5,766 bases of DNA. Origin: Fonticula alba ATCC 38817. Lineage: Eukaryota > Protista > Nucleariida. The position numbers and the translations under genes were made by a program. Each line of letters starts with the position of its first letter. The stretch's first letter is position 1. The stretch lies in the NCBI GenBank assembly GCA_000388065.2, contig KB932206.1; one strand, given 5' to 3'. Under the pieces are notes generated by a model. It was given only the letters and a program-made list of their open reading frames with translations, was not told the DNA's origin and made no database searches. Shown one piece after another: positions 1,712 to 5,439 of this stretch.

Positions 1712-1903
1712 ATATGTTCACTTGCACAGCTGGCACTGCGATTCTCGGTTTGCTGCGCTCAACACTTGGCGGGCGGATCGTTCGGAAAGGGTTTGAGATC
1801 GGCTGCTTGCCGGAGGGGCGGCACAGCAGGGGGAGGGAGCAAGCACAAGAAGACGCGGCGCAGCGCTGCTGAAGTTCAATTATTTCGGCAAGAAAAGGGG
1901 GAG

Positions 1904-1906
1904 TGT
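1904..1906 (-). other. ACA box of the H/ACA snoRNA
   Basis: ACA one nt after the lower stem of the 3' hairpin and 14 nt from its upper stem. Confidence 0.8.
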
Positions 1907-1969
1907 TTGAGGTCACAACCAAAGCATACCACGTAGGTCGTGGTAAGCTCTTTCTCAATAAACCTCAGT

Positions 1970-1975
1970 TGATCT
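1970..1975 (-). other. H box (AGAUCA) of the H/ACA snoRNA
   Basis: Matches ANANNA, lies in the single-stranded hinge between the two hairpins, 14 nt from the 5' upper stem. Confidence 0.8.
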
Positions 1976-2441
1976 ACCATGACCAAAAGAACCACACCCA
2001 TCCAGTGGGAATATGGAAGGGTGCGGTCAGTGGCCTGGATTGCGAATAATATGCCACGGCCCGGCGCCGGAGCGAGAGCGCCACACACCCCGGGCCCTCT
2101 TATAGGGGCCCTTTTTCCCGGCATCCCGGAAGCAAGACCCACCGGGAAGAGAGCGCGACGCTCAGTCAAATGGCGTTACTCATTAACTGGGCGGCGGGAT
2201 TTTCGGCATCCCCCTCGCGCGAGGATACGGGATTTTGACGTCGCCGGAGGCCCCTTTCTCGGGGGGCACCGCCCGCGCCCCGAACCGCGTCGGCCGCCTG
2301 CCGTCCGGGCGCGGGCGAGCGTCCGGGTGCGCGCCCGACCCCTGCCACCTTGCCCTCGCCCCGCGCCGGCGCGCCGGTGCCCGAGCTTCTCTCTCTCCTT
2401 CTCCCCGGGTGGGCCCGGCCGAACGCACACGCATCCATGCC

Positions 2442-3313: not shown

Positions 3314-5080
3314 ATGGACCTCAAGGCGGCGTTTGACGAGATCCTCGCCGCGCCGATGGCGACAACCAGCTTTTGGAAGGACCTCTTCCTGCGGTATGTC
3401 TTCCACACGGCCACCTCCTCGGACCTGCTGGCCGATGATCTGCTCTTCTACGTGAAGCTGCCGATTGTCGACGGCGAGGTCGCCGATCTGCCGGCCGAGG
3501 ATCTGCTGATTGTCCGTCGCCGGACCGAGCCCAACGCCATTCCCTCGGATGAGGAGTCCCTCATCATCAACTGGCGCGAGACTTTCTACTTGAACACAGT
3601 GGTTCAGGTGCGTTGTTGCCATCTCTCCGGGGGCCCCGGGGGAAGGGTCAAGCGCGGGAGCAAGCGGCGCGACTCCCCGGTTATTGACGCATCAGCATGT
3701 CCACATGCACACACACACACACACACACACGCGCGCGCCTGTAGCTCAACTTCCAGCTTATGGTGGCTGTTTGCACGCGGCGCTCGGTTGGCACCGAGGT
3801 GGCCCTGGAGGCGCATCGGCATGTCGCCAAGCGGGTGTACGCCTCGCCGAACATGACCCGCATGGATCAGAAAGGTGCGCGACCCGGCCCCCCCCCCCCC
3901 CCCATGACAGGAGCCCCTCTGCGCGGGGCCCGACACACGCCTGGCACTAATCTGCCCACCTCGCATGCCCACCACCAGGCCACGACTACGCCGTGTCCTA
4001 TCCCCTGATCTACTTCATTGTCGAGGATTTCGAGGATGCCTTCGCCAACATCATCATCCATGAGAATGAGTACCTTTGCGTGGAGGTGTCCGTCAATTTC
4101 CAGGTCCCGGATCAGCAGGGGTCGGTGGTCGCATCGACCAGCGTCTCGCAGAAGCTGAACATCCCCACCCAGCAGACCCCCGACCGGCCGATGAAGGTGA
4201 CCATCTTCCAGGGGGCCGTCAACTGGCAGGCTCTGCTGAACACCTTCCAGAAGCAGCAGGTCTCCACGCTTCCCTTCACCCGGGCCGCGGCCTCGTCCTG
4301 TGCGTGGGGGCGCTTCCCCTGCCTTGGGCCGGCCGATGCCGAGCCTCGCAGCCGCGTCTCCGTGCCGCCACCCCCGCCACCACGGTGCTGACATACGCTC
4401 CCCGCCTCGCCCCGTCCCCCCTGTCCCCCATACCACCCATCCGGCTTGCCGGCCCTCGGCCCCCGCTTCGGCCATGTTTGAAAGCCGGCGATCGAGTTGA
4501 ATACATCATGATGCGCGGCCCCGGCGACAAGGGCCATACGCAGGTTGCGGTCAGCGTGCCGCCGGCGGCCAGCGCCTCGGGCGATCTCGGCGCCAGCGAC
4601 TCCACCGACTCCCTGCGGCAGGGGTTAATGCGCGGCTGGGCCCGCCTGCAGCAGGTCCGTGCACATACGACACCTGCCTGCTGTTCATATGCCCTCGCGC
4701 GCGCGCACACACACGCACACACACGCACACACACACACACACACACATTTGAGCCCCCTCCTTTCTCATCTCTCAATTGGCGGCTGCCCGCCCGCCCGAC
4801 GCCATACTCACCATCCCACTCCGGACATCGGACACAGACTGTGCAGGGACGCTACGAGCCGATTGCCCAACTGCGCACACAGCTGACATTCGTCAACATC
4901 CACTGGACGTCGATCATCAATGACATCATGGACGTCTACTACGGAAAATACAATCCCTCCGGCGACCCGAAGTTCACCACCTCGCGCCCGGCGCCGGAGA
5001 CCCCGCTAGCGGCCATCAACACTGCTCGGCACCTGGCGCAGGCGCGCTGTCAGGAGATGGCCGCCGCCTCCGAAAAGTAA
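3314..5080 (+). CDS. KIAA0930: KIAA0930 / DUF2045-family protein. Five exons: 3314-3607, 3745-3874, 3979-4299, 4485-4654, 4838-5080. 1158 nt, 385 aa.
   Basis: Introns keep the frame. 3608-3744: GTGCGT..GTAG, phase 0. 3875-3978: GTGCGC..CCAG, phase 1, CTAAT 3947-3951. 4300-4484: GTGCGT..AAAG, phase 1. 4655-4837: GTCCGT..ACAG, phase 0, CTCAC 4807-4811. The product carries motifs I recognise, in order, from human KIAA0930 (recalled in brackets): DDLLFYVK (DDMLFYVR), INWRETFYLNTVVQ-LNFQLMVAVCTR ([27 protein letters not shown]), RVYASPNMTRMDQKG (QVFASPSKHPMDSKG), SYPLIYFIVEDFEDAF (SYPNIFFMIDSFEEVF), IFQGAV (IFQGSI), VEYIMMRGPGDKGHTQVAVS ([20 protein letters not shown]). An extra upstream exon in the gap cannot be excluded. 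Confidence 0.92.
3708..3738. repeat. (CA)n(CG)n microsatellite in KIAA0930 intron 1
   Basis: CA run followed directly by GCGCGCGC, just upstream of the acceptor at 3743-3744. Confidence 0.9.
3888..3903. repeat. Poly-C tract in KIAA0930 intron 2
   Basis: 16 consecutive C. Confidence 0.9.
4696..4747. repeat. (CG)n(CA)n microsatellite in KIAA0930 intron 4
   Basis: About 52 nt of uninterrupted purine-pyrimidine alternation. Confidence 0.9.
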
Positions 5081-5299: not shown

Positions 5300-5439
5300 G
5301 GGGGGGGGGGGGGGGGGGNNNNNNNNNNGATTCCCAGCGCCGCCGTTGGGGGGGGGGGGGGGGGGAGGGGAGCGCGGGCGGCCGGACGGTTCGGTGGCGG
5401 TTGTTGTTATTGGTCTCGCCCCGCGTCCCCCCCCCCCCC
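5300..5439. repeat. Cluster of G and C homopolymers around the second gap
   Basis: G runs at 5300-5318 and 5348-5365, C run at about 5427-5439. Confidence 0.85.
5319..5328. other. Assembly gap (10 N)
   Basis: Run of N, preceded by a G homopolymer at 5300-5318. Confidence 1.

Follow-up and report, generated by a model that had tools for sequence, protein, structure and literature searches.

A predicted two-hairpin box H/ACA snoRNA gene in Fonticula alba with a putative guide pocket for a helix-38 pseudouridine of LSU rRNA

The minus strand of an intergenic region of the Fonticula alba genome, from about position 2060 to position 1901, is probably a genuine gene for a two-hairpin box H/ACA snoRNA of about 160 nt. 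The pocket of its 3' hairpin is predicted to guide a pseudouridine in helix 38 of the large subunit (LSU) rRNA, equal to human Psi1766/1779. All positions refer to the window, which is the whole stretch of 5,766 nt that was analysed (Fonticula alba ATCC 38817, contig KB932206.1, assembly GCA_000388065.2). An initial annotation, made on the letters of the window, had placed the snoRNA at 1901-1975 and expected an RNA of about 140 nt. This span was found to be the 3' half of the RNA and not its full extent, since a second hairpin (2060-1976) extends the molecule to about 160 nt.

Architecture of the candidate RNA

Box H/ACA RNAs are characterised by a hairpin-hinge-hairpin-tail architecture, an H box of the consensus ANANNA, an ACA box, and a distance of 14-16 nt that separates the H or ACA box from the base of the upper stem. 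The candidate RNA is composed of two hairpins (2060-1976 and 1967-1908), between which the hinge is located and after which a short tail follows. An ANANNA motif is present in the hinge and an ACA near the predicted 3' end, with the distance of 3 nt from ACA to the end being assumed; the box is 14 nt away from the upper stem in the 3' hairpin and 15 nt away in the 5' hairpin. The individual elements are collected in Table 1, together with the candidate TATA box and the neighbouring genes.

Table 1. Elements of the candidate snoRNA gene and its surroundings, with positions in the window
Feature	Position	Strand	Basis
Upstream neighbour gene	ends ~1280	plus	
UUUU run, 5-8 nt beyond the predicted 3' end	1893..1896	minus	sequence
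Predicted tail CUC, 3 nt, predicted mature 3' end	1901..1903	minus	H/ACA rule; SNORA79 alignment ends at 1901
ACA box, 14 nt past the upper stem	1904..1906	minus	sequence, fold, geometry scan
3' hairpin, lower stem, 3' strand GACCUCA	1908..1914	minus	RNAfold
3' hairpin, 3' pocket strand, 6 nt, guide element GGUUG at 1920-1916	1915..1920	minus	RNAfold, target pairing
3' hairpin, upper stem-loop, 12 bp, one U-U mismatch, loop ACCUA	1921..1951	minus	RNAfold
3' hairpin, 5' pocket strand, 9 nt, guide element UUGAGAA at 1958-1952	1952..1960	minus	RNAfold, target pairing
3' hairpin, lower stem, 5' strand UGAGGUU	1961..1967	minus	RNAfold
H box AGAUCA (consensus ANANNA), hinge	1975-1970	minus	sequence; aligns with the SNORA79 model hinge
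5' hairpin, lower stem, 3' strand GUCAUGGU	1976..1983	minus	MFE fold
5' hairpin, pocket, 3' strand UCUUUUG	1984..1990	minus	MFE fold
5' hairpin, upper stem-loop, 13 bp, one U-U mismatch, 9-nt loop	1991..2027	minus	fold
5' hairpin, internal loop, 5' strand, ~25 nt, unusually long	2028..2052	minus	MFE fold
5' hairpin, lower stem, 5' strand GCCGUGGC, 8 bp, pairs with 1983-1976	2053..2060	minus	MFE fold of 2062-1976
TATAAG, candidate TATA box, 39-44 nt upstream of the first stem	2099..2104	minus	TATAWR scan
Downstream neighbour gene, multi-intron, DUF2045 (PF09741) domain	3315-5080, start near 3315, 3' of gap	plus	

For the 3' hairpin, RNAfold of 1975-1901 returned the canonical geometry that had been described initially, including an ACA located 14 nt past the upper stem, and a lower stem of 7 bp (1967-1961 with 1914-1908); both guide elements and the boxes are read on the minus strand exactly where they had been placed. 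The fold has a free energy of -24.9 kcal/mol (z = -3.8), and none of 200 shuffled sequences was as stable. The 5' hairpin, drawn in the minimum free energy (MFE) fold of 2062-1976, likewise has canonical spacing, the H box being 15 nt past the upper stem; its lower stem is absent from the full-length MFE structure of the 162-nt RNA. Folded as a whole, the 162-nt RNA reaches -60.8 kcal/mol on the minus strand (z -3.9; as stable in 0 of 200 shuffles) and -50.4 kcal/mol (z -2.3) on the plus strand. The stronger minus-strand fold fits the presence of several G-U pairs, including some in the 5' upper stem, which exist only in the minus-strand reading and become C-A on the plus strand. The apical loops of both hairpins are devoid of UGAG, the CAB box that marks Cajal-body RNAs.

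The expectation for such an arrangement was estimated with a purpose-made geometry scanner, which searches for an ACA with a closing stem at most 2 nt away; the internal loops have to be two-sided, and the upper stem has to comprise 6 bp or more and to be separated from the box by 13-16 nt. Applied to both strands of the window, it returned one H/ACA-shaped candidate, which is the RNA described here. As a null model, 150 dinucleotide-preserving shuffles of the window were used, 110 of which were also scored for a canonical 5' hairpin. The hairpin-plus-ACA geometry alone was passed 0.39 times per shuffled window, while its combination with an ANANNA motif within 4 nt of the stem occurred in a single shuffle out of 150, and a canonical 5' hairpin in none of the subset of 110. 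At the real locus, all three features are present.

A search against Rfam had been proposed as a check in the initial annotation. No family reached its gathering score, neither with the whole window nor with a 211-nt stretch compared with 4227 families under permissive filters; the best match on the 211-nt stretch was, however, an H/ACA model, namely SNORA79, aligned over the full model to 2033-1901 of the minus strand with 20.9 bits (E 0.16) and ending exactly at the predicted 3' end at 1901. Scanning both strands of the window for box C/D snoRNAs yielded none. A scan for bacterial promoters and terminators, irrelevant here, merely re-found the hairpins. An H/ACA tail of the telomerase-RNA type was considered and rejected: no repeat resembling a telomere template was seen upstream, and the pocket matches rRNA.

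Three DNA sources contain other copies of the locus. Over the length of the RNA, all of these copies are identical to it; the one difference within 740 nt is located outside the RNA. The homologue comparison suggested initially yielded identical copies only, in which no covariation can be seen. Two of the sources are soil metagenomes, and the third consists of DNA runs that bear the label of a different, much-sequenced organism; contigs from them have 0-1 differences in up to 500 nt (within 1701-2440). Fonticula alba, or a near-identical strain, is evidently contained in the soil samples and travels as a passenger in sequencing libraries of another organism. None of the RNA runs listed contains the stretch, and in one small RNA run of the organism (11 million letters), nothing mapped to 1701-2440; this is not evidence of absence.

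Predicted target in LSU rRNA

The pockets of H/ACA RNAs pair with their target on both sides of an unpaired Psi-N dinucleotide. In the candidate RNA, the 3' pocket, scored on environmental eukaryotic rDNA contigs, forms 7+5 pairs, all of them Watson-Crick (UUGAGAA with UUCUCAA and GGUUG with CAACC), leaving UA unpaired within CAACC-UA-UUCUCAA; the context of the predicted target U is CC-U-AUUCUCAA. The LSU sequence on which the initial annotation had relied is real and widespread: a metagenome scan gave exact matches to the 23-mer beginning CAACCTATTCTCAA in at least 120 eukaryotic rDNA contigs of environmental origin, and the matches listed are all in the expected LSU context.

Two LSU fragments in contigs filed as viral have UGACC and CGACC before UAUUCUCAA, and the eukaryotic LSU consensus of Rfam reads cgaCCuaUUgUCAAACUUUAAAU, i.e., cgaCC instead of CAACC at the 5' arm. 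In the metagenome scan, CAACC is common. The first two bases of the LSU 5' arm evidently vary among eukaryotes; where a YGACC variant is present, the 5' arm would keep its five pairs, with one or two of them turning into G-U. The fragments themselves, in contigs L001 (4150-4213, 1-419) and L002 (3083-3290), are short pieces of eukaryotic LSU that adjoin unrelated, partly protein-coding sequence, and these contigs are chimeras of the assembly or, alternatively, elements that have inserted into rDNA.

Among 30 long rDNA contigs, the target is the sole site with 12 of 12 Watson-Crick pairs to the 3' pocket, and the other matches are rich in G-U pairs and mostly located in spacers. On an rDNA contig of 11.5 kb, an equal weighted score is reached by about 1% of random pockets and by 4% of composition-matched shuffled ones. 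The rRNA complementarity taken alone is thus suggestive, not decisive; it gains weight because it falls on a documented modification site and is accompanied by a fitting geometry.

This site can be identified from its neighbours. Yeast 25S Psi1042 (snR33) equals human Psi1769, and Psi1052 (snR81) equals human Psi1779, in the old numbering (PMC2794176); yeast furthermore has Psi1056 (snR44) and no pseudouridine at 25S 1039 (PMC8307265). For the stretch CAACC-U-A-U-U-C-U-C-A-A-A-C-U-U-U-A-A-A-U, a single register puts a U at 1042, 1052 and 1056, and therefore the predicted target is yeast 25S U1039 and human 28S U1766. The human site, 28S-1766, has SNORA47 (HBI-115) as its guide (PMC6466398) and is named Psi1779 in the newer numbering (PMC9941101). 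The assignment made initially, namely human U1766 with SNORA47, 3 nt upstream of yeast Psi1042, is thereby borne out (PMC2794176, PMC8307265, PMC6466398, PMC9941101). The predicted target falls on one of about 100 known pseudouridine sites of human rRNA and lies in helix 38, the A-site finger, in the region of intersubunit bridge B1a.

By analogy with all such RNAs, the candidate would assemble with dyskerin/Cbf5, Nop10, Nhp2 and Gar1. Through the internal loop of its 3' hairpin, it would bind LSU rRNA on either side of the unpaired U-A, with GGUUG pairing to CAACC just 5' of the target U and UUGAGAA pairing to UUCUCAA just 3' of U-A. This would bring the target U to the base of the upper stem, at a distance of 14 nt from ACA, for isomerisation to pseudouridine. 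We infer for this scheme that the RNA is made, that the LSU rRNA of Fonticula alba contains the target, that its U is modified, and that the gene has a promoter.

No conserved rRNA target was found for the 5' pocket with four definitions of the pocket base and 120 rDNA contigs. Its best match, AAAG-UG-GGUGGU with 4+6 pairs including G-U, occurs in 12 rDNA contigs and is no known site. We treat the 5' pocket, which belongs to a hairpin of canonical geometry, as a putative orphan.

Two other explanations of the locus have to be weighed. A chance pair of hairpins in intergenic DNA, in which ANANNA, ACA and 12 nt complementary to rRNA are present by coincidence, would give rise to no stable RNA, and with this the small RNA run without a match, the identity of the other copies, and the scores below the Rfam thresholds would agree; moreover, hairpin-plus-ACA geometries arise by chance in shuffled windows (~0.39 each), and an equal pairing score on an rDNA unit is reached in 1-4% of random trials. 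Such coincidence is nevertheless improbable, given that hairpin, ACA and H box came together in just one of the 150 shuffles and were joined by a 5' hairpin in none of 110, that a fold with a z of about -4 is found on the minus strand only, that a TATA motif is located at a promoter-like distance, and that the all-Watson-Crick match falls on a documented human pseudouridine which has a dedicated guide (PMC6466398).

The intact 3' pocket, which pairs perfectly with an LSU sequence that is very widespread and located at a known modification site, also speaks against a genuine H/ACA RNA that serves another purpose, be it as an orphan, as a guide for an snRNA or a lineage-specific rRNA site via the 5' pocket, or as an inactive or decaying copy. 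The 5' pocket without a conserved rRNA target in 120 rDNA contigs and the variation of the LSU 5' arm among eukaryotes would be in line with such a role; apical loops lacking the UGAG of a CAB box and the occurrence of no second copy within the window are not, and we consider it improbable. A two-hairpin H/ACA RNA with a 3' pocket directed at helix 38 is the preferred interpretation.

Genomic setting and transcription

The window consists of GC-rich eukaryotic DNA, in which the introns are short and of the GT-AG type. It is interrupted by two assembly gaps, and homopolymer and dinucleotide runs are numerous. The candidate RNA is located in an intergenic stretch of about 2 kb with plus-strand genes on both sides and is itself on the minus strand, antisense to both neighbours. 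A 625-aa open reading frame (ORF) listed from 1979 was discarded as an artefact that reads through an N gap; the real DUF2045 gene begins near 3315. No credible Pfam match was obtained for the ORFs that overlap the candidate RNA. One of them, at 1568-1936, has a sub-threshold, low-complexity match to Trypan_PARP (E 0.038; 14.4 bits vs. a cut-off of 100).

Between the 3' region of the upstream gene and the snoRNA, a tract of about 140 nt (1560-1700) on the plus strand is made up of purines only, in the form (GA)n/(GGGA)n, which is (CT)n on the minus strand. This tract is the reason for a long spurious ORF as well as for weak PARP-like Pfam and lncRNA Rfam matches. Elsewhere in the window, the 17-mer GATTCCCAGCGCCGCCG is present at 2622-2638 and 5329-5345, adjoining both assembly gaps, with one copy directly before the N run at 2639 and the other directly after the N run ending at 5328. 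Both copies also adjoin long G or C homopolymers, and the gap-flanking arrangement was seen in no shuffle; the pair is either an assembly-breaking dispersed repeat or a scaffolding artefact.

With regard to transcription, the antisense orientation to both neighbours means that the RNA is not in an intron of either of them. The candidate TATA box TATAAG is the sole TATAWR motif in the window on either strand, with 0.53 expected per window, and is enclosed by a perfect GGGCCC / GGGCCC palindrome (2111-2092). This sole, same-strand TATAWR motif upstream, together with the UUUU run past the 3' end, favours an independent gene and suggests a TATA-driven transcription unit, in which the promoter role is putative and based on motif and position. 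The palindrome at 2092-2111 possibly belongs to the promoter of the snoRNA gene. On the plus strand, it was also scored as a terminator-like hairpin.

An alternative that concerns only the biogenesis of the RNA is a spliced, non-coding host gene, unannotated and located on the minus strand, from an intron of which the RNA would be released. Sequences reminiscent of splice sites are present on both sides, namely GUGUGU at 2088-2083 and, downstream, a pyrimidine-rich tract with CAG at 1871-1869, after which the long (CT)n tract of the minus strand follows. GUGUGU, however, departs from the GTRCGY found at all six introns readable in the window, and the nearest branch-like motif is merely ~7 nt from the CAG; furthermore, no spliced RNA was seen in the one small RNA run (11 million letters), and the single TATA motif of the window is located at promoter distance. 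An intronic origin of a real RNA is less likely, and an independent gene is the reading followed below.

Significance and comparison with known guides

Fonticula alba is a deep-branching relative of the fungi, the non-coding annotation of which is very sparse; the candidate would enlarge it by one gene. It would be an ordinary H/ACA guide, which leaves the understanding of the H/ACA mechanism unchanged. The predicted pseudouridine of the A-site finger, being present in humans but not in budding yeast, would support an old site that was lost in yeast. A more far-reaching picture combines a TATA-driven gene, a 5' hairpin that guides a lineage-specific or non-ribosomal RNA, and a helix-38 pseudouridine at least as old as the ancestor of the animal and fungal lineages; in this full combination, we regard it as rather unlikely.

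In overall shape, the candidate resembles SNORA79 (RF00600), the full-length alignment with which reproduces both hairpins, the hinge box and CAAACA. Its score of 20.9 bits, compared with a gathering score of 55, indicates a generic resemblance of architecture and not membership in this family. Close to the predicted site, yeast snR33 and vertebrate SNORA9 (ACA9) act on the neighbouring Psi1042 of helix 38, 3 nt downstream (PMC2794176, PMC2653536). These guides differ from the candidate in that they address another uridine, and U1039 is without pseudouridine in yeast (PMC8307265).

The same LSU uridine as predicted here is addressed by the box H/ACA RNAs SNORA47/HBI-115 of humans and GGgACA33 of chicken. 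In chicken, the site is 28S-1699, and the guide is contained in the 5' hairpin of GGgACA33 with 6+4 pairs (PMC2653536), whereas the guide of the Fonticula RNA resides in the 3' hairpin and forms 5+7 pairs. The Rfam model of SNORA47 gave no match even at E 10 when the whole window and the 211-nt stretch were searched, and there is no detectable similarity in sequence or structure between SNORA47 and the Fonticula RNA. The likeness therefore points to an equivalent predicted function rather than to common descent, and the candidate is not filed in the SNORA47 family. Genes of the SNORA47 type are intronic in vertebrates, in contrast to the Fonticula gene, which runs antisense to the genes on either side and possibly has a promoter of its own.

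Outside the animals, the human U1766 equivalent is assigned to the predicted H/ACA guides ACA-Eh-LSU1159a/b of Entamoeba histolytica, which have no yeast counterpart (PMC3542256). These RNAs belong to another supergroup, are computational predictions, and are likened to the Fonticula candidate by their site alone; at this level, they represent a further case of the same helix-38 uridine being served by a predicted H/ACA guide.
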